From contig CDRNST010000093.1 of NCBI GenBank assembly GCA_977016875.1, positions 62,001 to 126,000 of the forward strand: a stretch of DNA of 64,000 nt, read 5' to 3'. A program made the position numbers and the translations under genes. Position 1 is the stretch's first letter; each line of letters begins with the position of its first letter. Origin of the DNA: Pavona decussata (lineage: Eukaryota). Positions 2,166-37,331 of this stretch are shown one piece after another. Under the pieces are notes generated by a model. It was not told the DNA's origin. It saw only the letters and a list, made by a program, of their open reading frames with translations, and did not search any database.

Positions 2166-2870
2166 ATGCCGAAAAAGAGACGTTTCAAAGTGGCCATATA
2201 TGCCAACGAGTACAGACAGATTTGCGCTTGGGTTTTAAAGAACCAGACTCTTGAGACAGGAGGCGATTTGTTCGGTCTCTGGGCGGACGATCGCACCGCT
2301 GTCATCCAACTGGTGTTGGGTCCAGGAGAAAACTGCCGAAGAGCGCCTCACTCCTTCTACCAAGACGTGCAATATCTTGAAAAGGTTGGCTCTGACTTGA
2401 CCGGAAAGGAAGCACTATGTCACATCGGCGAGTGGCATTCGCATCACACGATCGGTCTCACACGACCAAGCGGTGGCGATGAAGGAACCGTATGGAGAAA
2501 CATGCCAAACTACGGCCTGAACCGCTTTATTCTGTTTATTGCCAACATTGGATCGCTGTCTCCTTCTGAAGTGAGCGTCGGCTGCTTTCTGTTTGAATTT
2601 GAGAAAGGATCCAGCCGGAAGCTGCCGGTGTTAGAGGGAAGCTTCGAGCTCTTGCCGGATGAGAGCCCCTTCCGTTCAAAGTGTGTCAGCGTTTTGGGGA
2701 AAGGAGCAGAGTACATCAACAGTGACGAAGACATCGCTTGTCTTCAAGAAGTATCAACAGATGAAGCTAAAATAGCTGCAAGGCGGCCAGTAATGAGGGC
2801 TGAAGAGTTGTCACAAAGTCAAAGGAAAAAGAAAAGGCGCTGTCCTTGTCCGTGGTGCACAATGCTGTGA
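2166..2870 (+). CDS. JAB/MPN+ (JAMM) metallopeptidase, prokaryote-like, single domain (JAB-A), with a C-terminal polybasic CaaX tail
   Basis: Uninterrupted ORF (in-frame ATGs at 2139 and 2166; 2166 matches the start of paralog JAB-B). It has ETGGDLFG (catalytic Glu) and IGEWHSHHTIGLTRPSGGD (JAMM HxH...SxxD). It ends RKKKRRCPCPWCTML. Confidence 0.88.
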   Translation: MPKKRRFKVAIYANEYRQICAWVLKNQTLETGGDLFGLWADDRTAVIQLVLGPGENCRRAPHSFYQDVQYLEKVGSDLTGKEALCHIGEWHSHHTIGLTRPSGGDEGTVWRNMPNYGLNRFILFIANIGSLSPSEVSVGCFLFEFEKGSSRKLPVLEGSFELLPDESPFRSKCVSVLGKGAEYINSDEDIACLQEVSTDEAKIAARRPVMRAEELSQSQRKKKRRCPCPWCTML

Positions 2871-4639
2871 ACTATCACATATTATATTAACACAGTTACT
2901 TTACACTACATTGCATTATAAGACAAAAAAAAAACATATCCCGGCCACTGAAATTGATGTGTAGCCGTTTGGTCTCAATATACCGGTGTCTAAGGGTGTG
3001 ATATTTTTAACTTGTACAGAGTAAAAGTATCTGGCCGGGATATGTATATGCAGCATATTTATCAATTGTCGCCCACATGCTGGCTCAAGAAGTCACTCGG
3101 AACTATGTGATAAAGCAGCAAATCGTGTAGGATTTACACGCTCTATTGCCTCGTGTCAGTGCATCATGTATGTAACTTCTAGGGTACCCAACGGTTTACT
3201 TCGGCATATATCTGCCAGTTGGATGGCCTTAATCGCCTCAGAAATTCGGGTTTCGTCGTAAAGAACATCTTCAGTTTTCTTCACTAGAGAACTAATATTA
3301 TTCGTTTCGTTTTCAAAGGTGCATGTATGTCGTTAAAAAGGAGGGGAAAAGGTCATCTAGCATTTTCATCAAACTAACAACAAGTACATTAGGTGAACAC
3401 GATTCCGTTTTCTGAAACCATATGCAACCTAAGCAAGGTTGGCAATATTGGCGGGGAAGCAATATGATCTTGGAGATTATGGCCTGCTCCAAGTACCTGC
3501 TCCAACATGCCCATGAAATTACGCGTAGAAAGTCATTGTCTTCTATACTTCGTACCGGAGTGCATGTGAAAACGAGTGTTGTGATCCCAATTAGGTGTAA
3601 GATGGCATTTTTTTGCTTGTAAATTGAAAAATAAAACCTGGCGGCTGAAAAACGAGCTCTGACTCCAACTGTACTGAGTGTTACCCAACATGGCTCCCAG
3701 GGTCTTTCACCTCCCCACCCCATCCCAGAGTTAGAGAGGTTGTCTCGTACGCCCACCATGGCTATGCGTTTGGTTGTATGTCCCCACGAGGTATGATCGA
3801 AGAAAGCTTTAGTCATGTGAACGCACCCAAGGGGAAACGTAGGTGTAAAGCAAAATAAGGGTGGTTTAATTTCTCGCGCAGTCGTTCGGTGAATTATATT
3901 TTTCGAGAGGTTGCAAAATTGGCGAAATATATCACACGTTGTACAGATCCATTTTGAAGATTAAAATGCCAGTGCAATCAGTTAACTTTGATTTGTAAAC
4001 CATCTGAACCGATCTTACAACAGCTAAGTTTTCTCAAAATGTTAGTCTTGATCATTTTGCTCAGGTTGGATACTAAGTTACAAAAAGTTTAGATGCCGAA
4101 TATAATAATTCCAAAAATCTGGCATTCTTTACATAATATGTTGCCGTGGCAACGGTTCCTAAGATACGAAACCAACGGATAATTAAAAATTTAAGAGGTC
4201 ATTTAACGTTTCTAGAATCCAGGCTGCATGCAATTTTAAGAGAAAAGGCTACCGGAAAACGTCAGCAGCTCAAACTCGACGTGGTTTGTGTAGGTACTAA
4301 TTATAATTTTAAAGAATAAACTGCAAAGGACCGCAGAGAAAATGCTGCAAGTTTACGCAGGATCTGTAAAAGATCTAATCAGCCAAAAATAAACATAACC
4401 TAATTTTAAGAGCATGGTTGTCTTTTCTCCCCTCCCACCACTCCACATATATTTTGTTTGCGTTGCCTCACTTCCAGTTTTCAGCTTCACTTAGAACTAC
4501 GCAAGCTTCGTAGTTCGCACATTTTGAGTCAGTTAAATTGTGCGTTTACCACAATCGTCAGTAGTTGATTTTTCTTTTTAAAGGATGGATTTACCTTTAG
4601 GAGAAAATTTATTCTTTGATCCTACAACTGGAAGACTTT

Positions 4640-4868
4640 ATGCCCAATCGAGAAACGTAGTCCCACAATTGATGAGTTCATGCAAGATCCCTCAAGATAT
4701 CCCAACTACGTGTTAACGGTGAATTATGAAAACGGAAAAATGGAGATAAAGAATAAAGCCTCTGCTCAGAGGCAATCAGATTGTCAAGTGGTCACTGGAA
4801 TGGCCGCTGATGGCTTTTTTCAACCGTTCAATGCATTAATCATGGACGTTGAACACGAACGTATATGA
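4640..4868 (+). CDS. Small GFF-motif protein P1 (putative precursor/substrate peptide); start uncertain, possible 1-nt frameshift near the 5' end
   Basis: ORF 4680-4868 reads MQDPSRYPNYVLTVNYENGKMEI...DCQVVTGMAADGFFQ and is clearly homologous to P2. Homology continues in frame upstream of 4680 (SPTIDEFMQDP vs KKVDVDKYMEHP), and an out-of-frame ATG sits at 4640. Confidence 0.72.
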
Positions 4869-5851
4869 CTGTATTTGTCAGCGTACCACGGCCGAAAACA
4901 TTGACACTCAACTCGATATGATGTGATTCAACTTACTCGCACGCAACTGACCGTATTTGTGTAGAAATTGAGTATGACGCTCCTGACTATGGTATGGTAG
5001 AATACTGTTGCACTGTAACTATCGGCTTAGAGAGATCAACATGCACATTATCTTATTGTGTTGTACTTGGTTTAGCAGCAAAAATAGCGGCGGATGAAAC
5101 AAAATGGCGTCTCCTCTCGTAGGCTGAAGTTGATTTGCCGTTTGATATTCACCCGCTCAGTTAACTGTGTATGTACGTGGCTTTGTGTAACATTCATGTA
5201 TTATATATGTCATTTATGTAATTTGCACTGAGTTTGAAGAACACTACCCATATTACTTATATTAATACATTTAAAGCATATCTAGCTTAATATAAATAAA
5301 GCTTTAATCAAGCCATGTTAGTCAGCGTGATGGTGCCAGGGGAATCGATACACTGTACTAAGCACATAGGCACACATATTACACTTTAATTGTGATCAGA
5401 CGAAAAGCAAATGGGTCCTGTTTTGTAGAGTCTAGCATAGATATGATTATGTCACGCTTAAGACTATTTACAGTAAACATGGTTTCAGAGGAACGATTTT
5501 CAATAAAAATAGGAATTTTGCTTTAACCATATTCAGGAGTGCATATGAGAAATCCATCTCTACATCGAACTTTTGACTTAACTTTTGTTTGTTCGTAAAA
5601 TTGAAGTTATGCACATTCATTTTAGTTTGTTTTGACATCCGCGATTTCCGAGAAATGTCATTAGAATTCACAATTCAAGTCACGCTTGACAAAATGAAAA
5701 GTGTAACTTTACTATTGGCATCATCACAAGATATAAATACATCACAACGAATTTCTGCGAAATAATTTTAGTTCGAAAACAAAACACTGCAGGCACTCAC
5801 ATTATAGTTTTGGAAGTACTTTACTTTTTTTAAAAGCTGATCAGCATCTTA

Positions 5852-6601
5852 ATGTCTAAGGGCAAAGAGTTCACAGTGGCCATATATGCCGACGAGTACA
5901 GACAGATTTGCGCTTGGGTTTTAAAGAACCAGACTCTTGAGACAGGAGGCGATTTGTTCGGTCTCTGGGCGGACGATCGCACCGCTGTCATCCAACTGGT
6001 GTTGGGTCCAGGAGAAAACTGCCGAAGAGCGCCTCACTCCTTCTACCAAGACGTGCAATATCTTGAAAAGGTTGGCTCTGACTTGACCGGAAAGGAAGCA
6101 CTATGTCACATCGGCGAGTGGCATTCGCATCACACGATCGGTCTCACACGACCAAGCGGTGGCGATGAAGGAACCGTATGGAGGAACATGCCAAACTACG
6201 GCCTGAACCGCTTTATTCTGTTTATTGCCAACATTGGATCGCGGTCTCATTCTGAAGTAAGCGTCGGCTGCTTTCTGTTTGAATTTGAGAAAGGATCCAG
6301 CCGGAAGCTGCCGGTATTAGAGGGAAGCTTCGAGCTCTTGCCGGATGAAAGCCCCTTCCGTTCAAAGTATGTCAGCGCTTTGGGGAAAGGGGCAGAGTAC
6401 ATCAACAGTGAAGAAGACATCACTGGTCTGGAGGAAATATCAGCTGATGCGGCCGAAAGAAACACAACGCGACCTGTGATGTCTCGTAAACGGAAGAGAC
6501 CACACGTGGAACATCAAAATGAAGATGAAGAAAGAGACGTTAAAGCTAAAACCGTAAAAAGGCTCTACCCTCCTGACACATCTGTTTTTACTAGTCATTA
6601 G
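5852..6601 (+). CDS. JAB/MPN+ (JAMM) metallopeptidase (JAB-B), near-identical core to JAB-A, with an NLS-like tail
   Basis: ETGGDLFG and IGEWHSHHTIGLTRPSGGD motifs. The C-terminal tail contains RKRKRP...KTVKR. Confidence 0.88.
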   Translation: MSKGKEFTVAIYADEYRQICAWVLKNQTLETGGDLFGLWADDRTAVIQLVLGPGENCRRAPHSFYQDVQYLEKVGSDLTGKEALCHIGEWHSHHTIGLTRPSGGDEGTVWRNMPNYGLNRFILFIANIGSRSHSEVSVGCFLFEFEKGSSRKLPVLEGSFELLPDESPFRSKYVSALGKGAEYINSEEDITGLEEISADAAERNTTRPVMSRKRKRPHVEHQNEDEERDVKAKTVKRLYPPDTSVFTSH

Positions 6602-7493
6602 ATCAATTACACAGACGAAAATTATACTGAAGGGACCTAGTGTCGTTGAAACCTTCAGTTTAAAAGCTTAGTGTATTTGTTTTTAAAATTGGTGGATAAG
6701 CTGAATGTCAAATAAATATAGGAGAAATGTATTTAGCGCGGAGCGCTAATTGAGGAGACTCTCTGGGTCGAACTGATTTTTGAGGAGAGGGGAAAACCGG
6801 AGTTATCCGGAGAAAAACCTCTCGGAGCACAAAGACGGAGTCCGGAAATCGGGGCCACACTGGGAGGAGGCGAGTGCCCTCACTGCTCCCCAAACATTAC
6901 GTTTTGTGAACAATATAGCAAATAAACATTTTTAAATGCACCTTGTATTGTACTAATTAGGATTTACATAGAGATACAACCAGCTTAAATCAGTGTTATC
7001 CTGTAAAAGCTGTACACAGAGTGGGTAAATGTTGAGGCAACATGTAGAATTATATACCGAAAGAATGGGGCCGCGCGGGAGTGGGGTGGGTAGGATAAAT
7101 GTGGCGCATACACGTACGGTATACTACAGTGTCACCTTCATCTCTTGTCCCCCTTTGATTGACATCAAGAGCAATCCTTCGTGCTCTTTAGTTTCAGTTC
7201 TCATTCATAACTCCCATTTTAAAGCTGTAATGTATTTTGTTTTGTCGTCTTTAGAGAATTATGCTGCTCAACGTTCGAATTCTTGGGCTCATCAAATAAT
7301 GAATTTGTTTAACAGAAATCGGCCTGTCCCCCTTCCCCTGATTCACTCCTTCTGGCTTTTTCCCGGAATCAAGCACAAGGTATGAAGACAACTCCCTGAA
7401 GTAAACCTTGAAGCTGTACCTCTGAAGTTGGGCAGAAATTCGTCCCTACTGTACCTTACTGGGCCGTCATCGTTAAGAGATACTGTCGGAAAC

Positions 7494-7706
7494 ATGTCTT
7501 CTCCTAAGAAAGTGGACGTTGACAAATACATGGAACACCCAGAGAATTTTCCGAACCAAGTGCAGGTGATGAATTATGAGAATGGAAGGTTTGAGATTAT
7601 GTCTGAAGCCGAAGCTCGTACAAGAACTGATCGCCAAATCGTAAGAGGGATGGCTGCTGATGGCTTCTTCCTACGGCTTACGTACGTCGAACATTCTGGT
7701 CACTGA
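7494..7706 (+). CDS. Small GFF-motif protein P2 (70 aa)
   Basis: ATG at 7494 in AACATG context. Reads MSSPKKVDVDKYMEHPENFPNQVQVMNYENGRFEI...TDRQIVRGMAADGFFLRL. Paralog of P1. Confidence 0.8.
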   Translation: MSSPKKVDVDKYMEHPENFPNQVQVMNYENGRFEIMSEAEARTRTDRQIVRGMAADGFFLRLTYVEHSGH

Positions 7707-9810: not shown

Positions 9811-9863
9811 AAAATATATTTTATTCTTTTCCAGAGAGGTTGCCCTCACTGACGATAAGCACG

Positions 9864-11156
9864 ATGCATGAGGTACAAGATGAACGTAAAGTTGTCTGCT
9901 TTCTGCAGCCCAATTTTACTGATGTCCTTAAAAACAACGACGCTGGTGAAAAACGGTTTTCTGTGACTGTATTTGACGACTGTGACACGCTTCACGTCCG
10001 GGTTCATTGCAACGATAAATCGTCTAATCCAGAGCCCGAGAAACGCGTCGCGTTCAAGGTCTTTAAAGAGCTGCCTCAGTGTTCGGAGATTTTAGATATT
10101 GCTTCTAGTCTCATTTCCAGCCTCCCAGCCCTTGATGTACCACAGGTCGCAATTTTGGTTTCCGAAGACGACCATGTCAGAGCTTGCGTGAGACCAAAGT
10201 CAACCGAACTGCTAGAACAAGCAGCCGTCCTTCGCCAACCACGAAAAGCCCAGCTCTACTCCCGAAGCCATGGCATACTGGAGTCGAGTCTTCTGGAGGA
10301 CCGCAAGGTTGCAGTAGTCGGGCTCGGTAGCGGTGGTTCCCAAGTGGTTATAGAGCTTGCTAAGGCTGGAGTTGGCAAGTTTATACTGGTCGATTTCGAT
10401 CGAATCGAGCTTCACAACATCGTCCGCCATGTTTGTGGTTTAAGCGATCTGGGACGCCTGAAGACCAATGTCATGCGAGACCGTATCTTGGACAAGAACC
10501 CGTTCGCTGAGGTGGAAATCTACAACACCAACATCAACAATTTAGAAGACGCCAGAAAAATTCTCACGGGAAGCGACATTATCATCGCAGCCACAGACAA
10601 TATCAGAAGCAGGCTTAACATCAACACCCTGTCCATAGAGCTTGGAATTCCCACCTTGTATGGGAAATGCGCTGTGAGAGCTGCAGGAGGAGAGGTGCTG
10701 CGTGTGAGACCGAAGGTAGGTCCTTGCTTCTCCTGCATCTATGCGGATGCATCTATGGAAGCTGCTGCAGAGGAGATGTCTTCCTTCCGCCAAGCGCGCG
10801 AGGCTAATCCACCATACGTTGGAGACGATGAAGTGAAAGCTACCATTCAAGTTGGGCTGTCTTCTGACATCAACCCCGTGTCTAATATGCTAGTGAAGCT
10901 TGCTCTGGTGGAGCTGTGTCGTGGTAAAGACAGCGCTCTGAAGACTCTGGAGAGCGATCTGGAGGCTCCATACTACATGTGGGCCAATCGCAGAGAGCAG
11001 CAGTATGCCGGGTACCCAGCAGATGGCTTCCACAGGTTTGACAAGCCCGCTATTCTGAGGTGGTACCCAATGATGAGCGAAAGAAAAGCTGACTGCAAAA
11101 CTTGTCAAGACATGGAAGTGAGCGAGGAAAATGTCGATTTTTTCGCTGGAAAATAA
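9864..11156 (+). CDS. ThiF/MoeB/E1-like adenylyltransferase with an unassigned ~140-aa N-terminal domain
   Basis: LYSRSHGILE..L..RKVAVVGLGSGGS (GxGxxG), DFDRIELHNIVRH, GRLKT, ATDN and two Zn-binding CxxC motifs (CFSC, CKTC). The first ATG is at 9864. A splice-acceptor-like ttattcttttccag ends at 9834, so an upstream exon is possible. Confidence 0.92.
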   Translation: MHEVQDERKVVCFLQPNFTDVLKNNDAGEKRFSVTVFDDCDTLHVRVHCNDKSSNPEPEKRVAFKVFKELPQCSEILDIASSLISSLPALDVPQVAILVSEDDHVRACVRPKSTELLEQAAVLRQPRKAQLYSRSHGILESSLLEDRKVAVVGLGSGGSQVVIELAKAGVGKFILVDFDRIELHNIVRHVCGLSDLGRLKTNVMRDRILDKNPFAEVEIYNTNINNLEDARKILTGSDIIIAATDNIRSRLNINTLSIELGIPTLYGKCAVRAAGGEVLRVRPKVGPCFSCIYADASMEAAAEEMSSFRQAREANPPYVGDDEVKATIQVGLSSDINPVSNMLVKLALVELCRGKDSALKTLESDLEAPYYMWANRREQQYAGYPADGFHRFDKPAILRWYPMMSERKADCKTCQDMEVSEENVDFFAGK

Positions 11157-12618: not shown

Positions 12619-12852
12619 TCACCAACGCATAAAGCCTCCAACATCGTTTTCCTGTGAGATATGTTCACTAAAACTGAAGAATCCCCCTGAGCCGGCTTTA
12701 TTCATGTCCAGCATGACCGTCCTGTCGGAATTTTGGGCTTCGTGTTGTGGTTTCACCATCAACTTTCCGGTGGCGGGATCAAAAACCAGAGATTCAGAGC
12801 TGCCTCCTCTGTTCTCAAGATGTTGTTGAATACGCTGTGGGTTTGAAGACAT
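12619..12852 (-). CDS. Small GFF-motif protein P3 (77 aa)
   Basis: MSSNPQRIQQHLENRGGSSESLVFDPATGKLMV...SDRTVMLDMNKAGSGGFFS...DVGGFMRW, with ATG at 12852. Confidence 0.8.
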   Translation of the reverse strand: MSSNPQRIQQHLENRGGSSESLVFDPATGKLMVKPQHEAQNSDRTVMLDMNKAGSGGFFSFSEHISQENDVGGFMRW

Positions 12853-13337: not shown

Positions 13338-13661
13338 ATGGACCCAACCGAGGAGAACAACCAGCAGAACGAAAGAGAATTTGACTTCCATTTTGTCACG
13401 AGGAAGGACGAAGAAACGAAAGAGGAAGATGGCAGCACAAGTGCAGTGAAGTCAGAGGTTGTAGCAAGCCGACTGAAAGTTATCGCTAAAGGTGGACAAG
13501 ACAACACGAAAATGGAAAGATTGGTGTTTGATCTCAAGAGTGGAAAATTAACTGTGGAGACAGAGTCAGAGTCCACCCAGCTTGTAGTATCATCGCCTGA
13601 GAGACAGGTGATAGAGGGAATGGCCACCAGTGGGTGGTTTGCTGGGGACAGTTTGAACTGA
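13338..13661 (+). CDS. Small GFF-motif protein P4 (107 aa)
   Basis: ...MERLVFDLKSGKLTVE...PERQVIEGMATSGWFAGDSLN carries both family motifs. Confidence 0.8.
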   Translation: MDPTEENNQQNEREFDFHFVTRKDEETKEEDGSTSAVKSEVVASRLKVIAKGGQDNTKMERLVFDLKSGKLTVETESESTQLVVSSPERQVIEGMATSGWFAGDSLN

Positions 13662-14713: not shown

Positions 14714-16168
14714 ATGGCAGCCAAGAGAAGTAAGTGCCCGAAAATTTACATGTACAGTAAAGATCGTGAACGGCTAAACAAGTTTGTCAGTGAACATAAA
14801 GATGGGGAAACTAGCGGCGATCTGTTCGGTTTGTGGACAGACGACAACGAGATCGTTATTCACCTAGTTACAGGACAGGCCGGAAGTGACCAGCATCAGG
14901 CTGAAAAGCGCTCGGCCTCATCAAATACGGAGGATGACACGAAAAATATGAGAAAAGCTTTGATGAAAACTTTCGGGCTCCCTCGCATTGGACAATGGCA
15001 GTACACGACCGACGAAAATAAAAGCAGAAGTATGATGGTGGCAGCCCTACGAGGCGATAAAGGATTATTTAAAAAAGAAATCGAAATTTCGAGAGCTCTG
15101 CTCATCACAGGGAACTACGACCGATCTGAGGTGCAGTTATCCCCGTATCTTGTGTCCACCACCTCAGTCTCAAGCAAAGGGGAAATTGACACCCTTGAAG
15201 ACGAAAGTATCTTCAGGCAAGTTGACGAAATTAGAAAGATTACCGGCGAAACAGTGGCAAGCGTAAGTGGCCGAGAAGTAAATGAAAGGAAAGGCGAGAT
15301 GAACAAAGGCCCAACCACCATTGATGAAAGTAGCTACAAGAAAGCGATCACCAGTAAAGAATCCGTCGAGACCGGTGTGGGACATAGCAATCTTGATTCA
15401 ATGTGGGAATCATACGAAAGGATACCAAGGGCACAACTAGGCCGTACCAACCCTTTAACGGTTTACGTGTTTCAGGAAGACCTAGATATGGTGTCAAGGC
15501 TGGTTCTTGCGTATCCAGATGTGGAAACTGGGGGAGACTTGTTTGGTTTGTGGACGTCCGAGGGTGATGCAGTGATACACATAGTACTAGGTCCTGGAAA
15601 ACATTGTAGCCGTACAAACGTGTCCTTCAACCAAGATATCCCTTACCTAAAGAATAACGGTGAGCTCCTTACCCAAGACTACATGTTATGCCACATTGGA
15701 GAATGGCACTCCCATCATCAGCTGCGCCTCTTCCGTCCCAGCGAGGGAGACTCAACGACCGTGATTAGGAATTACCCCCAGAGTGTCCTAGGGTTTATCT
15801 TGATCATTGCTAACATCGTGGAGCGTGGCAGGGCGGTGAAATTGTCGCCCTATCTATATACGCAGAAATCCAAGTTTACCTATGACAAAGAGGGGAAGGT
15901 TATTTCTTTACCAGCTCGAAATGTCTTCAAGGAAGTACCCAATGTTCAGAATGTCATGGAAGAAGGAAAGGAGACGGAGCAAGACGTCCAGCGCTATTGG
16001 ACGTCGCGTCATCAGCAGTACCAGACGGCTAGGAGAAAGGGTCACCCTTGTCGAGGCCTATCACCGGCAAGAACCTATCCACCGGGACACGGCAGCACGG
16101 AGGAACCTATGGATGTGGATCCTCCTGAATATGCGCACAGAAATAGGCAATCAAAAGCGAGGCGTTAA
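14714..16168 (+). CDS. Tandem JAB protein (JAB-C): N-terminal degenerate JAB plus C-terminal intact JAMM
   Basis: Domain 1 has ETSGDLFGLWT...IGQWQY and lacks HxH. Domain 2 has ETGGDLFGLWT...IGEWHSHHQLRLFRPSEGD. Confidence 0.88.
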   Translation: MAAKRSKCPKIYMYSKDRERLNKFVSEHKDGETSGDLFGLWTDDNEIVIHLVTGQAGSDQHQAEKRSASSNTEDDTKNMRKALMKTFGLPRIGQWQYTTDENKSRSMMVAALRGDKGLFKKEIEISRALLITGNYDRSEVQLSPYLVSTTSVSSKGEIDTLEDESIFRQVDEIRKITGETVASVSGREVNERKGEMNKGPTTIDESSYKKAITSKESVETGVGHSNLDSMWESYERIPRAQLGRTNPLTVYVFQEDLDMVSRLVLAYPDVETGGDLFGLWTSEGDAVIHIVLGPGKHCSRTNVSFNQDIPYLKNNGELLTQDYMLCHIGEWHSHHQLRLFRPSEGDSTTVIRNYPQSVLGFILIIANIVERGRAVKLSPYLYTQKSKFTYDKEGKVISLPARNVFKEVPNVQNVMEEGKETEQDVQRYWTSRHQQYQTARRKGHPCRGLSPARTYPPGHGSTEEPMDVDPPEYAHRNRQSKARR

Positions 16169-16629: not shown

Positions 16630-16824
16630 NNNNNNNNNNNNNNNNNNNNNNNNNNNNNNNNNNNNNNNNNNNNNNNNNNNNNNNNNNNNNNNNNNNNNNN
16701 NNNNNNNNNNNNNNNNNNNNNNNNNNNNNNNNNNNNNNNNNNNNNNNNNNNNNNNNNNNNNNNNNNNNNNNNNNNNNNNNNNNNNNNNNNNNNNNNNNNN
16801 NNNNNNNNNNNNNNNNNNNNNNNN
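16630..16824. other. Assembly gap (N run)
   Basis: Run of n characters. Confidence 1.
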
Positions 16825-18250: not shown

Positions 18251-18472
18251 CACCCTGTGATTTTGATAGGCTATGTCGGTGTAAGTAGGGCTATACTGCA
18301 AATAAACTTCGCATTTTTATTCTCAAGTTATACTGAGTAAAAATGAAGGTGTTCAGGGAAATGGCTTGGCCCTATTTATATGCCACTGTATTAGTAACTC
18401 GACTCAAAATAATTGACGGTGTCAGTTTTGCTGCTATTTATTTTGTTATAGGTATATCTTTCCACCTACTTT

Positions 18473-18515
<43 letters not shown>

Positions 18516-18516
18516 G
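18473..18516. repeat. (CTGT)n microsatellite
   Basis: Direct reading. Confidence 0.95.
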
Positions 18517-18969
18517 ACTGTTTGTCCGCCGGTTTGACTGTCTATAGATGTATCTACCAAAAGATCTGGATATTAGCAGATATGTCGATATTCTAAGAAA
18601 CCAGACAACACCTTTTACATGTTTCGATCTTCTTAGAGCATCCTAGATTTTCTTAGAGAATCCTAGATCACGCTCCTACCACCTTTCAACTTAAGACAAA
18701 AGAAGCCATTCATATTCAATGGGAAAAACCTACACTTAATCATCAACTGTATCATGTTATTTTAAAACTTTCTCTGTAATATTTTACATTGTCATGTTTC
18801 CTTTGTGCTTATAGTTAATCAGCATTTTGGTTTACACTATATATTCAACTCTGTGCTTTGTAATTTAAACTGAAGATGACAGAAGTTTCTGTCGAAACAT
18901 GTTTCCAAATTTAAAAAGTGTTGTGTGGTTTCTTAGAATATCCACCTATCTATCCACCTCAATGTGTCT

Positions 18970-19283
18970 CTATCTGAGTGTCTCGCTAGCCTCAAGGCTC
19001 CAGAGCTGAGAGATGATGCTGTTTGATCGCCACCTCTTAGTGAAGAAACCACCTGATTCGATTTTGTACAAATCGACCATAACAGGTCTTTCGCCGGTAG
19101 ACCCAGGGGCTATTCGTCGTGTTTGTCTACAACAACATATGAAGGAAAACATCGTTGTGAATTGTAGATCTCGTCTCGGCATCACCTTCAACTTCCCTGT
19201 CGTTGGGTCAAAAAACAGTTCTTCCCTGACCTGCCTCTTCTGCTCTCTAAATGTTCTTGAATTTCGCATGGGTTGGATGACAT
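18970..19283 (-). pseudogene. Small GFF-motif protein P5, frameshifted paralog of P3
   Basis: ATG at 19283 gives MSSNPCEIQEHLESRRGRS (compare P3 MSSNPQRIQQHLENRGGSS). A frame change near 19225 then gives EELFFDPTTGKLKV...GERPVMVDLYKIESGGFFT. Confidence 0.75.
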
Positions 19284-20272: not shown

Positions 20273-22417
20273 ATGCTCTCGTTAACTGGGCAAACGACTA
20301 TGGAGAGGTTGCAGAGAACCAGTCAAAGAGCTTTTATTTTCGAAGGAGATTGGAAGAGACTTCTCGCTTCCAAGACAACCCAAGAAAGACAAGGAAATTT
20401 GTTCGGCTTGTGGACAAGCGAAGGTGATCCTGTTATTCATATCATAACTGAATCAGACTGTTGTCCTAAGAGTAAACATTCTCGATTTAGTCTGGCTGAC
20501 TTCCCCGACAACCGTTTCCCTCTCGTGCATATCGGTAACTGGCGTTATGTTGGTCCTTCTTCTGCACATGTTGAAGATGAATCAACCACCCTTGCCTCTG
20601 ACTATTCCAGGTCTTGTCAGAACACAGAAGACTATTTTCTAAATATGATTATCACTGAGTCTGATATTACCCTGGAATACCGGCGCAATTTCAAGATGAA
20701 AATTTTGTTTCTTCCTAACGAAAGCCCGTTCAGGCGCTTAGCAGCTATGGAAAAGATCACCATCAAAGGCCACGACGAGAATACCGACTACGAGCTGAAG
20801 GAATCATTCGTCAAAGAGGATTACCCTACCAGACCGAGACATCATCAAATCGAAGATTCAGACGCAGATGACTTAGAAGATACACTGGAGACTTCAATCG
20901 CTAAAGGCGAACGGAAGGCCTTTATTTTCAGAAAGGATTATGAAAGCCTCCGTTTAAATGCAACTCATGGCGAAAGGCAAGGAAATCTGTTTGGCTTGTG
21001 GACAACCAACGGTGAACCTGTTATTCACGTTATTTGTCGACCGAACTGTTGTCCCAACAAGTATGACTACTCACGCCTTGGAGTAGACATCTTCAGCAAT
21101 GATTTCCCTCTCACACACATAGGCAACTGGCTTTATACCGACGTTTCGTTCTCTCATGCCCTTCCCATGAAATCACGTGGGCTTGACTCTTCATGGTGCC
21201 CTCACCAAAGCAAAGCCACCGGCAAATTTCTAGACGTCGTGATCCTAAAGTCAGCAATCCTGGTGTTACAAGATGGGCGAGAGAGGGAAATTGAGCTTCT
21301 TGACGGCAGAAGCCCGTTTAGGGACATGGAAGGCTTTAAAAGGATCGCCATAAAAGATCAGTACGATGATTTTACTACTGAGCTGGAGGAACCGATGAAA
21401 CACCTTTCAGTCACTTCAAAGCGTATCTCTCCGCATCAAAGAAAGGAAATGTCAAGTTCTCCAGATTTTGAAGATCCGCCAACATACCGTGATAGTATCT
21501 CCAGTAGAGATGGTTGGCAGGAAGGCCCAATGTATCTGGGGACGCCAGGATTTCAGCGTGACTTTACAAGCAACAGCGATGATTTCAAGGTCTTCATCTT
21601 TGAGGAGGACCTCCAAATGATGGCGAAACTCGTTCTCAAGTACCCACACCTGGAGACCGGAGGAGACCTGTTCGGTTTATGGACCACTGCAGGTGACGTA
21701 GTACTACACATTGTACTTGGCCCAGGTCAAAACTGCAAACGAACTGGAGCTTCCTTCTACCAAGATATCTCTTATTTGAAGCGAAATGGTGAGCTGCTTA
21801 CTCAAGACTACATGTTGTGCCACATTGGGGAATGGCACTCCCATCATCAGCTGCAGCTTTTCCAGCCAAGCGGGGGTGATTCATCGACCGTTATAAGAAA
21901 CTACCCTCGTGGAGTCTGTGGTTTCATTTTGATCATTGCCAACATTCTGTCATCACGTGAAGTGCAGTTGTCTCCTTATCTTTACACACAAGGGTCCAGT
22001 TATAGCTTTGATAAAAAAGGCAAACTTGTACGACTGCCTGCGCAAAGAAATGCATTTAAGACAATTCGAAGGATCAGAGATAGCATCGAGAGAGGAAAAG
22101 AAATTCAAACGCATTCCCCAAGTTTTTACCGTGACGAAGAGGACGTGAGGAACGCCTATGATCCCAGAAGACACCCAACCCAAACTGGAAAGACCATGCA
22201 AAAGATGAGCCAGGCCCGTGATCCCATGACATACACAAGGCAAAACCGTAATTACAAACAACTGCATCGACTACAAACTCGTACGCCCACTGGCCAGCTG
22301 AGCACGCCTCCGCGAAGAATATCTTCCAGTTCGAGACTGTGTTGCTTTCCAAGTAATCGTCACAAAACAGCAAGGTACAACAACAGACCGGACAATCGAC
22401 CTCCTTGGAGACATTAA
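20273..22417 (+). CDS. Triple-JAB protein (JAB-D): two degenerate JAB domains plus one intact JAMM
   Basis: ERQGNLFGLWT...IGNWRY and ERQGNLFGLWT...IGNWLY both lack HxH. The third domain has ETGGDLFGLWT...IGEWHSHHQLQLFQPSGGD. Confidence 0.88.
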   Translation: MLSLTGQTTMERLQRTSQRAFIFEGDWKRLLASKTTQERQGNLFGLWTSEGDPVIHIITESDCCPKSKHSRFSLADFPDNRFPLVHIGNWRYVGPSSAHVEDESTTLASDYSRSCQNTEDYFLNMIITESDITLEYRRNFKMKILFLPNESPFRRLAAMEKITIKGHDENTDYELKESFVKEDYPTRPRHHQIEDSDADDLEDTLETSIAKGERKAFIFRKDYESLRLNATHGERQGNLFGLWTTNGEPVIHVICRPNCCPNKYDYSRLGVDIFSNDFPLTHIGNWLYTDVSFSHALPMKSRGLDSSWCPHQSKATGKFLDVVILKSAILVLQDGREREIELLDGRSPFRDMEGFKRIAIKDQYDDFTTELEEPMKHLSVTSKRISPHQRKEMSSSPDFEDPPTYRDSISSRDGWQEGPMYLGTPGFQRDFTSNSDDFKVFIFEEDLQMMAKLVLKYPHLETGGDLFGLWTTAGDVVLHIVLGPGQNCKRTGASFYQDISYLKRNGELLTQDYMLCHIGEWHSHHQLQLFQPSGGDSSTVIRNYPRGVCGFILIIANILSSREVQLSPYLYTQGSSYSFDKKGKLVRLPAQRNAFKTIRRIRDSIERGKEIQTHSPSFYRDEEDVRNAYDPRRHPTQTGKTMQKMSQARDPMTYTRQNRNYKQLHRLQTRTPTGQLSTPPRRISSSSRLCCFPSNRHKTARYNNRPDNRPPWRH

Positions 22418-24609: not shown

Positions 24610-25875
24610 ATGGACGTTCTTCGTAATGCGTTTGGCTTTGGAGCGCGTTTTAAAGTCCACATGTTTCACGAAGACGTTGACAGGATGACGCAACTAGTTC
24701 TCCGTCATCCAGCGAAAGAAACAGGAGGTAATCTGTTTGGTTTGTGGACTCACGACCAAGAGCCTGTTTTGCACATTGTGCTTGGACCAGCTAAAGGCTG
24801 CACACGAACGGAGGTCTCTTTCTACCAGAGCATTCCATACCTGGAGCGTGTTGGGAAGATCCTTACGGAACAGTACCAGCTCTGTCACATTGGAGAGTGG
24901 CATTCGCACCATCGACTACATCTCTCGGAGCCAAGCAGCGGTGATTCATCGACCGTGATTCGAAATTACCCCAGAGGGACGTGTGGTTTTCTTCTCATCA
25001 TTGCCAACATAAAGCCAAGTGGGGAGGTCACCCTATCGCCGTACCTTTACAAAGAGGGACAAAGAGACTATGAAAAAGGTGAAGTTCACATTATCCGTGG
25101 CTCATTGCAGAGTCCATTCAGTAAAGTGGAATACATACTGAAAAACATAAATGATGGCGAAGATTGGAGTACGACTATTAACGAGCAAAGGCCGAGGGTA
25201 AATTATGGGCAGAATCCGCCTGTCCCTGCAAAAAATGACGAAGAGCCCTGTGTTTACATGTTCCAAGAAGACGAGAAGATGATTAAGGAGTTACTTCGGG
25301 AACGTGGTACCGGCAAGATTAACATTGAGGGAGAATTGCTCGGCTTGTGGACAACTCGCAAAGAACCTGTGTTGCACGTCGTCCTCAGGCCGAACAGTAA
25401 CAAGAAGGAACAACAGCCATTTAACCATCCTCTACAAGAGGCCGAGGAAAAGCCAGGGGAAAGCCTTTCAAAAGAGTATCCATCCTTGCAAAATATCGGA
25501 AGATATGTTCTTCGAGATAATTCTCTGCCAAATCCAAATCCAAATCCTGAAAAAGGAAGTTTAGAAGAAGCTTACAGGATCTGCCAAGAATTTCCTTACG
25601 GGGGTGTTTTGGTCGTAGCTTATTGTGTGGTAGTTGACGCCGAGGAGCAACCTGCTTTGGCTGGGTATGTATACCACGGCAATCCGGATAAATGTCAGTC
25701 ACTTGAAGTAAGCATCCTTTCTGGTACAAAGATCTACAGTGAAAAACAGGAGCCAAACGGCAAGATTGAGGAACAGGGAGGCAAAGAAGGAGACACCAAA
25801 GGGGATCTAATAGATTTCGACGAAAAGCGGCCTGACTCCCCCAGTGGAAACTTCGGACAGGATACGTTTGTCTGA
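24610..25875 (+). CDS. Tandem JAB protein (JAB-E): N-terminal intact JAMM plus C-terminal degenerate JAB
   Basis: ETGGNLFGLWT...IGEWHSHHRLHLSEPSSGD, followed by a second domain VYMFQED...IEGELLGLWT...NIGRYVL that lacks the metal ligands. Confidence 0.88.
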   Translation: MDVLRNAFGFGARFKVHMFHEDVDRMTQLVLRHPAKETGGNLFGLWTHDQEPVLHIVLGPAKGCTRTEVSFYQSIPYLERVGKILTEQYQLCHIGEWHSHHRLHLSEPSSGDSSTVIRNYPRGTCGFLLIIANIKPSGEVTLSPYLYKEGQRDYEKGEVHIIRGSLQSPFSKVEYILKNINDGEDWSTTINEQRPRVNYGQNPPVPAKNDEEPCVYMFQEDEKMIKELLRERGTGKINIEGELLGLWTTRKEPVLHVVLRPNSNKKEQQPFNHPLQEAEEKPGESLSKEYPSLQNIGRYVLRDNSLPNPNPNPEKGSLEEAYRICQEFPYGGVLVVAYCVVVDAEEQPALAGYVYHGNPDKCQSLEVSILSGTKIYSEKQEPNGKIEEQGGKEGDTKGDLIDFDEKRPDSPSGNFGQDTFV

Positions 25876-26749: not shown

Positions 26750-27010
26750 ATGGAGGATAAGAGTAACCGGTCAACCAGGCCATATGACACAGGCTACAGC
26801 GAGTCGTTAAGAGACAGAGCGGCGGTGGTAAACTACAGCAATCGGCGACCACAAGAGGCAAGACAGGAGCGGCTTCACTTTGATATGGATACCGGACGAT
26901 TGATGGTGAACAATTCGCCCGAGGAACAGCCAGCTCTGCCGGATAGAGGACCCGTGCCAGACCGTCCTGTTCTGGATAAAATGGCTTCTCAAGGTTTCTT
27001 TCTTGACTGA
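26750..27010 (+). CDS. Small GFF-motif protein P6 (86 aa)
   Basis: ATG at 26750. Reads ...QERLHFDMDTGRLMV...PDRPVLDKMASQGFFLD*. Confidence 0.82.
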   Translation: MEDKSNRSTRPYDTGYSESLRDRAAVVNYSNRRPQEARQERLHFDMDTGRLMVNNSPEEQPALPDRGPVPDRPVLDKMASQGFFLD

Positions 27011-30000
27011 ACTGTGTCGGCTCTGAACTAAAGTCGAGTCGGACTGCTAGATGAATGCTTTTTATGACTCATAGATAAACATTAACGCTTTGTAAATCGC
27101 TAAAATGTTCATCGAGCAACCTGTGGGAACAGTTACAGAGAGTAGAAAATTATTTATAACATCTTGATGTCAGTATCATGGGCTCTTCACCGACTGCTTC
27201 ACCATCGATTATAAATGCAACGACTGTAACCTAGAATGGATTAGTCATAATTTTCTGTCAATTTAAATTCAGTAATAGCTTAATAATAGCCGAGACCATT
27301 TAAAGATCGAATAGAAGGTTCCATTTTTCCGTTGTCGTAGCCGTTTTGTGTCTGACAACAAATAAGTAAGTTTTCGTCCGAATACTGTAAACTATCTTGC
27401 TGGTTAATTTCGTGCATAAATTTTTAGACTTCTACAACATCAATGTAACGTCCAGCATTTTCCAGTTGGCAATTTGTTGATTTCGTTTTTATCAATAACA
27501 TGGATAGCTGTGTATCATGTAATAAACTCATTGAAAAAGGAGCGTAAGAATCTATATTCTTGGCTTACATGTTTAAATTACGATATCTCAGTGTTCGGCT
27601 CTGCTGTTTGGGTGTCATTGGCCAAATCTCAAACGCAATAGACGAGCTTGTTTACTTTATGGCAATATTTCACCTTCTTTGCTAAATCTGAATTGAATAC
27701 GTGTACAACACACACCAAATTATATTTCCTCTATATAGCAGTACGGATGTATCAGCTGTCGACGCGGAGCAGTAAAGAGACTCCTTATATTATAGAAGCA
27801 TTTGAAACTATTTTCTCTATTTAAGAGGAAGCGGTGAAGGATATTCTTCATCTTCATGGTATTAATCTCTCCCCCAAGGAATCGTATTTAGGCTCTTTCT
27901 CTTCTCATTAATTACGGTATGCCGCTTATTTATACACGTTTTCTACATTCAGGTTGTTCTGGCTTTCGAAGCATACTGACAGGTCATCATGATCATCACA
28001 TTTCAGCATTCCTACAAAGCGTCAACACAGCGAAGATAGTTTGTGTTGCGAGCGAAAGTGAAAAGTACAACGTCGGAAAACCAAGGATATCTTTAATGTT
28101 TGCAAATGCTTCTTTTTTTTATCGATACGCAAGACTTTTTAAAAACCGCAGTAAACCACGATACAAAAGGGATTCTAAAAAGGATCAAGTTAAGACACAT
28201 CTTGTAAACAGATTTTCTCTCATTTCCAAGAAAACTCATGTTTTGTATTTATGAACCAAGCGACCAATCAGACGGAGGCAAACTCTCAAGGGCTTAAAGT
28301 TCGATTTCCAAGGTAAGTCATTTTCCAAAAATAAGACTTATTAACATGCGACAAAAACATGTCAGTGCAAACAGAGTGTTTCATTATTTACAAGACACAT
28401 TCCAAGAAAATCCGGATGACTAAGGACACTTGTTATAAATTGTCGGCATTTCCGGGAAAAACACCAAGACAAAAACATTGCTAACAAACAGACCTGTTCC
28501 AAGATTACCATTCTTACAATTACCATTTAGTCCATCTGTTTTATCCACGTTTTCTTGAAAATGTTTGTCAAAGCCAGAGCCAGAAGATATGCCTGCTTGG
28601 AAGAATGTTCAGCAGATTTAAACAATAACACTTCAGTTTGTTTTTCAAGGTTTTCACAGAAGGATCGATTGCTCACACGAGGGGAAATTTCCCGGAAATA
28701 TGACATATGTACAAACTCCTATTGATTCTAACCGAAGGAACATGCCGCGGGTACACGATGAATATACATTTGTTCGGTTTAATTTCATGATGCTGCAGAA
28801 GGCAGATTGTTCTGACCCATTAATTGGATAAACCTATTCCGGCTCATTGCGCCTCAACCTTTAAGTTACAATGAGTGCAGATCGAAAAACGTAATTCCCA
28901 ATGACATAATTCTATCCGTACCCATTCCTAAATAAAATGAAGTTGTTTGATATGGTCGATTATTTTCCGTTGGCTTGTCTCTTTTCTGTTCCGGTGGGAT
29001 GTTCTCCGGGCCCTTTCGCGTTCCGGTTGAGGTCACGCAATTTTTCGAATCTGTCACGCTTAGTCACACTACTTCTCACAGTTTTCTTTTTAATTCATTG
29101 AAAGACTTACCTCATGTTAAACGGAGGGAAAGCGCTATAGAGATGTCGAAAGCTATGCTTTTTGTGTCATTCTTTTATTAATTTTTTTTTTAGTTAGTCA
29201 AATTAAAGTGCGTTGAGGGGTTTTAATCTGCCTCCCCCTCCGTGGACTTCACACGTTTATGACTTCACTGATGTCAAATTAAACCACCTGACCAATCTCA
29301 CTTCTAAGTGAACTTGATGATGCGATCCATATGTCCACTGAAGTGGCCGCGCGGTGGTGCAGCGGTTCTATGGGAAGGTCGAGGAGTGGTTGATTTGCGA
29401 CTGGGTCCTTCAGTCAGATTGTTCTCCTAGTCAAGACACTTATCTCCTCATGTGCAGGCTCTTTCTCTCCCCCAATAGCGCAGTAAGGGTGAATTTTAAT
29501 TTGATTCCAGTTTAATAAATAATCAGTAAGAATTTTGGCGAAAAATTATTTCCCTTCAGATTGAACGTAACTATCTTCAGCTGCTTCCATTGAATTGCAT
29601 TGCGCATCCTAACTGAGCATAATTTCATGTGTCATTAGCGCGCCCAAATAATAAATTGCGAGATGACTGGTCGTTTTCTCCTAAGCAAGCCATGATAGTG
29701 ATCCCCATATGCATTTTTATTTCATATATTTTAAGATTCTCACTGATATATCCAAGTTTGAAGAATATTTCGTAATTTCAGGATCTTTGACCTAGAAGTA
29801 ATCAAAGTGAAACGAAAAACGCTTAAATGATAAACAAACATAAAAATAACTGTCAGAAAGTTAGAGGGAGAGTTTCACGGTTCGGCGCATGTGCTGTTTT
29901 TGGACCAATTAAAACCAATACATGACACCAGCGGGATACGGCGGGCAAGAGCGGGCAAGTCTTATAACTTGTTCGCCAGGCCAGTGTAAAATTAACGTGA

Positions 30001-31417
30001 ACTACCATACCAAATTGTTCCCTAATAAATTTCTGAAAATAGTTTCTTGTCGTATACGCAAATGTAAAGAAACGTTATAAACTTTCAAAGTAGTCGCGGG
30101 CAGAACCCACCCCACCCCCGGTCTAGATAAGGTTTCACTTCTGCACCCATCCAAACAAACATGGTTAAATATGACCAACTTTGGTGCTATAGTTAAAACT
30201 TGGCGTGTCAGGCGACGTTGGTGGCCCTTTCATCTTTCAGTTTGTTTCAGAAGGTCCAAATGTAAAAGGTGGTATCACTCGCTATTATAAAACCATTTCT
30301 GGAACTGGAAATTGAAATTCAAGTTCCCCTTCTATTGTTATGTAAGATTTCATTTTCCATCACAATGATACAAAATCGTGCGATTTGTCTCTATTTAAAA
30401 TTCACTTTGAGAGGAAACAGCCCTGAAAAGCCAGGACAAAAGACTTGATAATAAGGTAAGGAGTCATTTAACTTTAAAGTCCATTTAACTTAAATTTGCA
30501 ATAGCTGTTGATAAGTACAATCAATCAAGCTTCATTTATTCACAACAGTATTTGAATATCACTTAAACGGAGAGTCACCGAAACTGTTAAGAATCTTAAC
30601 TGGCTGAGCAAGAACCTGAAAAATCGACCTCCAGACAAAACTTACAAAACATGAACAAATTGAATACCAAGTTTAATGAAGCCCTCGCATAATATCTTAA
30701 TTTCTTAAAGTACGTTTTTGGCATGGTCCATGCACTAAGTGAGTCATGTTTTGCGGGCTTTTGGTGACCTGGCTTACGAGGTCGGCAGGTGGCAAAGTCT
30801 AATCAGTTGTTGCCGCAAAATAGTTTAGCTAACCTCAGGTAAAACGCTTCCCAGTGCCACGTTGCATAAAGAATCTTAAGACTGTCACGTTCGTGAAGAT
30901 TTTATGCAACTGGTTAGCTTGTGTTTCCGGCTCGTATGACGATCATTAACAACGGACACTGAAAAACAACAAAACTTCAACCAGAGAATTGGGAGTTGGT
31001 ACACGAAACCTCCACTTACGATTGCCCTATGCACCAGTGGGGCTATGATCTTTAGTAAGGTCACTACATTTTTTGAAACTGTTTCTAATGCCCATTCACA
31101 TCAACGCTTAAAAAACGTTTAAAAGCTGTTTAGTTAAACTCAGTTTAATTTTTTTTTCCTTCATAAAAGATGCTTTCGGATTTTTGTCGACTACATATTT
31201 AGCACAAATGAAAGCGTAATTTAAAGTTTTCTTGAATCCTTTGTCAAAGCCAATGGTTCAGCTTTCTATTACCAATTTTCATTTTGTTAAACCTAGCTTA
31301 ATTAAACATATTTTGTTGGCGTGAATGGGGCTAAGAAGTGTATTTCTAAATTAACATCCTAATCAACGGCGTCACCTTTTTGCAGTAACACCCCACGGCT
31401 CCAGTTTGAATTCCACC

Positions 31418-31627
31418 ATGTCCGATTCCAAAGACACCAGATCAGGAAATGGCAAGGTTGGATCACAGAAGTACAATCACAACGATGACGATCAGCCACC
31501 ATCTAACAGTGTTGCCGCGTCCGAGCCCGAGATGGAAACACTGGTTACACCGGGTGCCCAAGACTATCCTGACCGTCCTGTGGTAAGCAGTATGGCTGCT
31601 CAAGGATTTTTCGCGGACTCTGAGTGA
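31418..31627 (+). CDS. Small GFF-motif protein P7 (69 aa), lacking the FD..TG.L segment
   Basis: CCACCATG Kozak context at 31418. Reads ...EMETLV...PDRPVVSSMAAQGFFADSE*. A splice-acceptor-like cctttttgcag ends at ~31385. Confidence 0.78.
   Translation: MSDSKDTRSGNGKVGSQKYNHNDDDQPPSNSVAASEPEMETLVTPGAQDYPDRPVVSSMAAQGFFADSE

Positions 31628-37281: not shown

Positions 37282-37331
<50 letters not shown>

Follow-up and report, generated by a model that had tools for sequence, protein, structure and literature searches.

A probable bacterial-type conjugation module with a candidate short peptide modifier in the genome of the coral Pavona decussata

What might an adenylating enzyme of the E1/ThiF type, a group of JAB/JAMM peptidases and a family of very small proteins be doing side by side in the genome of a coral? 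The genes in question occupy positions 2139-31627 of a 64-kb stretch of Pavona decussata DNA (contig CDRNST010000093.1; the whole stretch is hereafter called the window). A first-pass annotation had located one E1/ThiF enzyme, five JAB genes and seven small open reading frames (ORFs) sharing a motif, all of which were confirmed at their places by ORF, Pfam and motif scans; between 2139 and 31627 the long ORFs are the E1-like gene and the five JAB genes, on the + strand throughout. The same annotation had described a candidate animal system; it is no invention of animals, and the genes belong to a bacterial four-gene module that is present in sponges and anthozoans. Its list of parts stood for the E1, the JABs and the peptides, but missed an E2 gene located outside the window, and the coral cluster totals one E2, one E1, five JAB genes and seven peptide genes. 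Shared operons, fusions and co-inheritance tie the four gene types together, and with moderate confidence we read the locus as an animal copy of a bacterial four-part conjugation system, expanded in tandem, in which a peptide of about 60 residues would be the modifier.

Parts of the module in coral and bacteria

The small proteins were collected by a six-frame motif scan of the window for G[FW]F after MAxx or a similar stretch, which yielded exactly seven small ORFs, all within 4680-31627 and none in the remaining 32 kb. Their alignment shows a hairpin-like motif, hFDxxTGkLxV (LVFDPxTGkLxV), and a C-terminal block, PDRxVxxxMAxxGFF, in which FF is conserved as strongly as G and beyond which 2-23 unconserved tail residues follow. 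Peptide 1 (4680-4868, + strand; 62 amino acids (aa) counted from an internal Met) and peptide 2 (7494-7706, +; 70 aa) both reach ...MAADGFF, with tails of 15 and 11 aa, respectively. Peptide 3 (12619-12852, -; 77 aa, ...GSGGFF and an 18-aa tail) is the coral peptide most like the bacterial ones, and peptide 4 (13338-13661, +) measures 107 aa, or 49 aa if read from the Met at 13512, with ...MATSGWF and a 6-aa tail. Peptide 5 (18970-19269, -; 99 aa), the orthologue of P0158, carries an insert of about 20 aa between the hairpin and the C-terminal motif and continues for 23 aa after ...ESGGFF; peptide 6 (26750-27010, +; 86 aa) ends in ...MASQGFFLD; and peptide 7 (31418-31627, +; 69 aa), identical to P0154, retains the C-terminal motif only (...PDRPVVSSMAAQGFFADSE). 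A fragment at 4585-4713 (+), upstream of peptide 1 and out of frame with it, encodes the first hairpin LFFDPTTGRL; the uninterrupted coding sequences attributed to the cluster from the outset are thus found in most genes and not at this frame shift.

A hidden Markov model (HMM) of the peptide made from bacterial sequences only ranked the seven coral ORFs and the fragment as the top eight of 1603 window ORF segments (E-values from 5e-11 to 0.05, the next match scoring 6.5), with 5e-11 for peptide 3, 1e-6 for peptide 6, 4e-6 for peptide 4, 8e-6 for peptide 5, 2.6e-5 for the fragment and 0.025 for peptide 7. Because this model places them at the top, the coral small ORFs are not chance ORFs. Searches of Pfam, NCBIfam and PADLOC gave nothing meaningful for the peptides, with no ubiquitin-like match in Pfam or NCBIfam, and the family is unnamed in all three collections. 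The predicted secondary structure consists of one helix, one hairpin and a short strand. In the model of a natural peptide-E1 fusion, the peptide body (predicted local distance difference test, pLDDT, ~80-85; helix 3-19, hairpin 26-41) docks on the E1 and the segment EEGFF scores below 50, a low confidence between confident regions that fits a flexible linker or tail. As modelled, the peptide is not a beta-grasp ubiquitin-like protein.

The bacterial counterpart is well illustrated by Aerosakkonema funiforme (locus L001), where an E1 gene stands beside a JAB gene (46% identity to the coral JABs) and a 149-aa E2 gene, and where the first ~65 residues of the E1 carry the motifs of the coral small ORFs, namely a helix, LVFDPTTGELVV and PDAVVADQIAEEGFF. 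That stretch of the cyanobacterial protein matched three of the coral ORFs (peptide 3, 2e-4; peptide 6, 1e-3; peptide 4, 2e-3; tblastn), from which it follows that the small peptide is often fused to the E1 in cyanobacteria. With the E2 alone as query and one genome per bacterial species, 30 loci of at least six phyla were returned, namely from Cyanobacteriota (including Prochloron and Hormoscilla), Actinomycetota, Armatimonadota, Pseudomonadota, Acidobacteriota and Binatota; nearly every locus has JAB, E2 and E1 side by side, and the peptide was detected in 24. The gene order, which each group conserves, is JAB, E2, peptide, E1 in cyanobacteria (the peptide being free, E1-fused, or both), peptide, E1, JAB, E2 in actinomycetes, and E1, JAB, E2, peptide in Pseudomonadota and Binatota, and the bacterial operon is small, with four genes in 2.5-3.5 kb. 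RefSeq labels the JAB and the E2 of the Acaryochloris plasmid pREB3 as 'hypothetical protein'. The first-pass annotation had proposed to look for co-localisation of the gene types in other genomes, and both the E2-seeded bacterial loci and the animal loci show them together. Its assignment of the small proteins to the E1 and the JABs is likewise borne out, as they share one bacterial operon and occur in natural fusions to E1, E2 and JAB.

The breadth of the family was surveyed with a profile made from 12 peptides, searched against 1.84 billion protein cluster representatives, which retrieved 213 representatives, mostly of 56-100 aa. Peptide-E1 fusions were found in many cyanobacteria and in P0205, alongside a peptide-peptide-E2 (P0141), a peptide-JAB (P0198) and a JAB-peptide fusion (P0201), and two copies in tandem make up the precursors P0137, P0142, P0143, P0177 and P0183. 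The residues after GFF, counted in 119 representatives, are unconserved and few: none in 6, at most two in 24 and at most five in 52. No family sequence among those read ends at Gly. Long profile matches (P0159 and others), which covered the hairpin part only and by eye looked like YD/RHS repeats, were taken as unrelated repeats.

The five JAB genes were all matched by a cyanobacterial JAB query (1e-32 to 1e-44, tblastn), their Pfam Prok-JAB matches being weak and under the curated cut-off. JAB1 (2139-2870, +; 243 aa; Prok-JAB 1e-4; tblastn 1.7e-42, 46% identity) and JAB2 (5852-6601, +; 249 aa; PADLOC JAB 2.4e-16, the single window gene tested with that model) each consist of one domain with an intact catalytic motif. 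JAB3 (14714-16168, +) has a degenerate N-terminal and a catalytic C-terminal JAB-like domain, JAB4 (20273-22417, +) two degenerate domains followed by a catalytic third, and JAB5 (24610-25875, +) a catalytic N-terminal and a degenerate C-terminal domain. Among the nine JAB-like domains of the alignment, the metal site E...HxH...S..D (Glu, HxH, Ser, Asp) is kept in five, namely JAB1, JAB2, JAB3 domain 2, JAB4 domain 3 and JAB5 domain 1, and lost in four; judged by these residues, five coral JAB domains are catalytically complete. JAB1 and JAB2 share 96.5% nucleotide identity over 580 bp, a degree of likeness that marks JAB2 as a recent tandem duplicate of JAB1. The duplicated units comprise a JAB and a peptide each (2139-4868 and 5852-7706), and their peptides are just 48% identical at the protein level. 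Eukaryotic complexes pair active with inactive JAB (MPN) subunits, and the fusion of coral JABs to inactive JAB-like domains recalls this pairing by analogy.

The E1-like adenylating enzyme (9864-11156, +; 430 aa from the first Met; Pfam ThiF 4.7e-35) is 56% identical to the cyanobacterial E1 (tblastn) and is built from an N-terminal domain, a ThiF domain bearing a pair of zinc motifs (CxxC) and an acidic tail ending in ...DFFAGK. Across the 56 sequences of the family the Gly-rich loop GxGxxG, an Arg, an Asp and the two CxxC motifs are invariant. The PADLOC E1-E2 models of the cyclic oligonucleotide-based antiphage signalling system (CBASS) match the window E1 at 3e-31; towards the NCBIfam ThiF and MoeB equivalogs the E1 stays far under the cut-offs (e.g., 92.7 bits vs. 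275), and the 6A-MBL E1 region appears among the NCBIfam matches of the cyanobacterial E1, again far under the family cut-off. For the N-terminal domain neither a profile relation to the E2 (hhalign probability 0.1) nor a PDB sequence match was found. The model of the natural peptide-E1 fusion (pLDDT 80.8) has Cap2 as its best structural match (PDB 7to3_A, 8e-17), followed by BubCD, MoeB, ThiF, UBA5 and MccB.

The fourth part, the E2, gave nothing convincing when searched for inside the window (best E-value 0.16, tblastn). An intact gene of 147 aa lies on the same contig, 3.9-4.3 kb left of window position 1 (L010:3563-4003, - strand), and the animal loci, like the bacterial operons read, encode the E2 as a separate protein of 147-154 aa; no E2 homologue was found in phage genomes. 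Sequence searches in Pfam and with PDB profiles returned weak UBC/RWD hints alone. The AlphaFold2 model of the coral protein (pLDDT 95.2) has Ubc9, UbcH5 and other UBC-fold E2 enzymes as its best PDB matches (probability 1.0, template modelling (TM) score 0.5-0.58), and among 29 homologues a His is invariant (H91) and a Cys 12 residues further on (C103) is present in 28. On the predicted fold, the 149-aa protein family of the operon is a UBC-fold E2 with a His...Cys active site. In Nocardia bovistercoris (L030:6001-6435) Ser replaces the catalytic Cys, which recalls the oxyester chemistry reported for Bub pathways.

The E2 bears directly on the nature of the product. One of the initial suggestions had been that the cluster makes a cyclised or adenylated peptide, as a pathway for ribosomally synthesized and post-translationally modified peptides (RiPPs), in which the small proteins would be precursors, the E1-like enzyme would modify their C-terminus (by adenylation, by cyclisation or, like MccB or PaaA, by amidation), the JAB would mature them and a free bioactive peptide would result. 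The several diverged, precursor-like small ORFs beside one E1-like enzyme are compatible with such a route, as are the matches of the E1 to MccB and PaaA in sequence and fold comparisons and the layout of a conserved core with a variable flank, which resembles that of a precursor. We consider it improbable nonetheless, on account of the E2 and its conserved catalytic Cys: a UBC-fold E2 with His and Cys was found in all 30 bacterial loci (the E2 being the query) and in the animal loci, which argues for conjugation, whereas known E1-dependent RiPP routes need no E2. Moreover, the E1 and the JAB are nearest to Cap2 and Cap3 rather than to MccB or PaaA; genes for transport, immunity or further tailoring do not recur in the neighbourhood (Pfam, 123 neighbouring ORFs); and the conserved part, with its ~60 residues and a folded body that docks on the E1 in the model, is unlike a short core peptide. 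Non-ubiquitin tagging, which had been put forward beside the RiPP idea, is the best reading of a dedicated peptide found with an E1, an E2 and a JAB.

Proposed conjugation of the peptide and its possible role

In the conjugation pathway that we propose, the JAB would cut off the variable tail, or the fused partner, beyond the GFF motif; the N-terminal domain of the E1 would bind the peptide body and the E1 would adenylate the freed C-terminus. The acyl group would then move onto the E2 cysteine as a thioester and from there to a target amine, and the JAB would also reverse the modification. In the coral, several diverged peptides and JAB paralogues would depend on a single E1 and a single E2, and the peptide would take the role of ubiquitin without having the beta-grasp fold. 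Processing is supported by the tails, which are unconserved and, between corals, frame-shifted with the core kept, and in the same way by the tandem and fused precursors. As to its site, the cut at G|FF suggested at first is one of two options, FF being as conserved as G and six of the 119 representatives ending exactly at ...GFF; going by the alignment, the cut may fall after FF instead of after G.

Several observations weigh against conjugation of the peptide. If FF is kept, the C-terminal Phe would be an unusual E1 substrate. The E1 has no Cys from the first CxxC to the 'IQVGLSSD' segment, the region of ThiF Cys184, and without a crossover-loop Cys the enzyme may lack the usual E1 thioester step or carry it out at another site; to judge from conserved residues, transfer may run straight from the adenylate to the E2, or via the invariant Cys in 'RHVCG' of the E1. 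The peptide was undetected in the four Acidobacteriota operons, and the animal loci show neither an E3 nor an effector. Contigs from Logan/ENA with close homologues (L043, L044) were colinear with genomic DNA or too short and gave no transcript support. Within the coral cluster, the copy of peptide 1 is frame-shifted by one base with respect to the two-hairpin orthologues P0134, P0152 and P0162, and peptide 7 is without the hairpin motif. To these points the C-terminus of the E1 has to be added: in both bacteria and animals it is a disordered, acidic stretch in which FF or IF precedes the last 1-3 small residues (alignment; DDSFFG, EDNIFAS and, in the window at 11100-11156, EENVDFFAGK), which resembles the (D/E)GFF of the peptides. 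The FF may therefore serve for docking instead of marking a processing site, and what is conjugated could be a molecule other than the peptide; the acidic-FF tail itself may be a docking motif common to E1 and peptide, or a pseudo-substrate.

These features of the E1 lead to an alternative in which the peptide is a regulator or an adaptor (a pseudo-substrate or a docking subunit) and the E1-E2 pair conjugates something else, perhaps the FF tail of the E1 or a protein encoded elsewhere, just as Cap2 conjugates the C-terminus of the cGAS/DncV-like nucleotidyltransferase (CD-NTase). It draws on the conservation of the acidic-FF-(G/A/S) E1 end in bacteria and animals, on the equal conservation of FF and G in the peptide, and on the closest relatives, CBASS Cap2/Cap3, which have no dedicated ubiquitin-like protein (PMC13276650). 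Tandem poly-peptide precursors, N-terminal fusions to three enzymes and unconserved tails are, in contrast, hallmarks of a processed modifier, and no CD-NTase or other recurring cargo gene was seen in the operons; we therefore regard a purely regulatory peptide as unlikely, although not far-fetched, and retain the peptide as the modifier.

As for the biology that such a modifier would serve, the cyanobacterial operons almost always adjoin a divergently oriented gene for a helix-turn-helix (HTH) + NB-ARC NTPase of ~450 aa, of the STAND type (signal transduction ATPases with numerous domains), located at L001:5012-6370 (-) in A. funiforme and with equivalents in L012, L013, L017, L019, L020, L022, L024, L028 and L033. 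Other bacterial neighbours include SAVED/Cap4, AbiEii, PIN and transposases, and copies are also carried on conjugative plasmids. A role in immunity or genetic conflict would, by analogy, be the most likely biology, because the related bacterial systems (CBASS, Bil, Bub, 6A-MBL) and the defence-island setting point that way, as context and not as proof. The animal loci have no STAND partner and no counterpart of the NTPase.

Animal distribution, selection and genomic setting

The closest relatives of the window E1 are coral-like, followed by those of Desmophyllum pertusum (70%), Actinostola, Dendronephthya gigantea (55%) and Oscarella lobularis (45%); beyond the animal E1s, the best matches are cyanobacterial 'HesA/MoeB/ThiF' proteins with 45-56% identity. 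E1, E2, JAB and peptide occur within 20 kb in Oscarella (a sponge), Dendronephthya (an octocoral) and Desmophyllum (a coral), and all four are also neighbours in the genome of the window itself. The animal E1s form one clade (Shimodaira-Hasegawa-like approximate likelihood ratio test, SH-aLRT, 100) with homoscleromorph sponges (Oscarella lobularis, O. pearsei, Corticium candelabrum) and anthozoans as its branches, the O. pearsei sequence being derived from a transcriptome, and sponges, octocorals, anemones and stony corals have all retained the system. Acquisition of the coral pathway from bacteria is the most likely origin; the tree does not settle the order with respect to cyanobacteria and actinomycetes, and since it was built by a quick method and includes several long branches from bacteria, the donor cannot be named. 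In Dendronephthya, a canonical GT..AG intron with a polypyrimidine tract lies inside the E1 domain (L007:11329-11513, for which the boundaries only were read), indicating that a bacterial-type gene has acquired eukaryotic structure.

In the databases, the anemone E2s are called 'uncharacterized' or 'RWD domain-containing' and one sponge E1 is mislabelled 'MOCS3-like'. A 'thif family protein', which may or may not be the E1 described here, is given one line as an anthozoan candidate for horizontal transfer from bacteria (Bhattacharya et al., 2016; PMC4878875). Neither the operon nor the animal cluster was found described in the searchable literature, outside which most subscription papers fall; it returned general classifications only (PMC1779556, PMC3417536), besides the Bub papers and the line in PMC4878875.

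Comparison of the window with a related coral contig (L043) shows how differently the parts have evolved. The E1 is 97.0% identical and free of indels, with 27 synonymous and 12 non-synonymous codon changes, vs. ~91% identity and many indels in its flanks, and these codon counts indicate that the E1 is under purifying selection. Peptide 2 has 86% nucleotide identity to L043:291-503, with 10 synonymous and 16 non-synonymous changes; its motifs and core are kept and its tail is frame-shifted in the orthologue. Between the two corals it diverges faster than the surrounding intergenic DNA (~91%), and diversifying selection on this peptide is possible, the numbers being small.

The excess of non-synonymous over synonymous changes in peptide 2, the frame-shifted and the hairpin-less peptide genes and the loss of metal ligands in four of nine JAB domains could also be expected of a decaying relic of horizontal transfer, or of symbiont contamination, with no present function. 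This is the least probable of the explanations considered, and we give it very little credence: the E1 contrasts with its flanks as described above, the E2 gene and the metal sites of five JAB domains are intact, one clade has been kept from sponges to stony corals, an intron has been gained in the octocoral E1, and the contig has intron-containing animal genes and a uniform GC content of ~40%.

These animal genes flank the cluster on its right. A gene of the beta-lactamase family (PF00144) is split into exons at 36914-39387 (-), with profile positions 16-61 at 39094-39387 and 144-186 at 36914-37300, and an exon encoding a SAM_PNT (SAM/Pointed) domain of an ETS-type transcription factor gene lies at 60358-60618 (-; 3e-16). 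The GC content is even across the window (~0.37-0.45), with the exception of one 2-kb block at 0.29, which holds a run of N. Contamination was rejected on the split animal exons in the flanks, the uniform GC and the octocoral E1 intron, and the cluster lies in a genuine animal genome. The N run of the low-GC block (37383-37855, the second in the window) falls within the span of the PF00144 gene, with a poly-Asp coding stretch alongside.

The first N run (16630-16824, 195 bases) is intergenic, in the interval from the JAB3 stop (16168) toward peptide 5, and neither an ORF nor a homology match was found adjoining it (ORF lists, tblastn, peptide HMM). The ENA contig ctg132166 carries both JAB1 and the last peptide and is 99.99% identical to the window where compared; from the coordinates only, JAB1 start and last-peptide start are 29279 bases apart on it, as in the window (31418 - 2139), and therefore the flanks of the N run are contiguous and its length is consistent. 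A very small gene inside these 195 bases may exist. In an ORF between JAB3 and peptide 5, at 18343-18537 (+), a repeat translating as SVCL SVCL SVCL is probably a microsatellite.

Relation to known conjugation systems

In bacteria, the only known substrates of E1/E2/JAB chemistry are beta-grasp proteins (Bil, Bub) and, in CBASS, the tail of an enzyme that acts in signalling. A short peptide dedicated to modification, if confirmed, would be a third solution and would mean that the conjugation logic does not require the ubiquitin fold. A bolder proposal, to which we assign somewhat less than even chances, is that the coral cluster represents a second, independent 'ubiquitin-like' pathway in animal cells, with a GFF-ending non-beta-grasp modifier and its own E1, E2 and JAB, shared between bacteria and early-branching animals, diversified in corals and probably serving immunity. 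Through intact, selected and expanded clusters in sponges and corals, the bacterial conflict systems adopted by early animals would gain an entire pathway instead of one more gene and, were the proposal true, coral and sponge biology a new post-translational modification; the four-gene bacterial operon is small enough for direct reconstitution.

CBASS Cap2/Cap3 are the nearest relatives, by HMM and by fold, of the E1 adenylation domain and of the JAB. The PADLOC CBASS JAB models score 1e-13 to 1e-16, and the NCBIfam Cap3 equivalog gives 0.028, far under its cut-off. Cap2 and Cap3 act without a dedicated ubiquitin-like protein (PMC13276650), and the likeness extends to the use of E1, E2 and JAB chemistry on a flexible C-terminal tail with no beta-grasp ubiquitin-like protein. 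Unlike Cap2, which is an E2-E1 fusion, the E2 is separate here and the N-terminal domain of the E1 is different. A dedicated small peptide gene is present, and the operon has no CD-NTase or cyclic-nucleotide effector: a nucleotidyltransferase is absent from the recurring Pfam families of the 123 neighbouring ORFs, just three of which are SAVED/Cap4, and no CD-NTase or cyclic-nucleotide effector ORF was seen in the window. With the anti-phage system 6A-MBL (cap2_3), the best NCBIfam match for the JAB domains (scores of 34-54 bits overall vs. a cut-off of 320), the differences are that the proteins are separate, with no triple fusion, and that no MBL recurs among the neighbours.

Short modifiers without a beta-grasp fold have a precedent in Pup, which is largely disordered, has ~60 residues and carries a conserved C-terminal motif. 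The relation is one of analogy only; pupylation uses glutamine-synthetase-like ligases (PafA, Dop) and no E1, E2 or JAB, and there is no sequence similarity. MccB and PaaA, among the PDB matches, are comparable as ThiF-fold enzymes acting on the C-terminus of a small ribosomal peptide; neither E2 nor JAB takes part in their pathways, and the core peptides are much shorter. Sulfur-carrier systems (ThiS/MoaD with ThiF/MoeB), which combine a beta-grasp carrier ending in GG with a rhodanese or sulfurtransferase and with genes for cofactor biosynthesis close by, differ in that neither a carrier nor a biosynthetic neighbour was found at these loci. Against ubiquitin-like conjugation systems in general, the E1 adenylation and zinc residues and the His and Cys of the UBC-fold E2 were found here, and the beta-grasp modifier and the E1 crossover Cys were not.

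The Bil (class 6d) and Bub (class 6e) systems share the organization, both being operons of E1, E2, peptidase and modifier, in classes defined by Iyer et al. (2006; PMC1779556). In Bub, BubAB is cut by BubCD, which shows that a modifier can be fused to an enzyme and freed by the peptidase of its own pathway, and BubCD is a peptidase-E1 fusion without a catalytic Cys (PMC11601596). The Bil and Bub modifiers are beta-grasp proteins ending in Gly, in contrast to the one helix, one hairpin and GFF end of the present peptide, which matches no ubiquitin-like family. None of the operon classes 6a-6e (PMC1779556) has the four-part make-up seen here. The locus is therefore best filed among the bacterial E1-E2-JAB systems, within which its distinguishing marks are a dedicated peptide without the beta-grasp fold and the retention and expansion of the module in early-branching animals.

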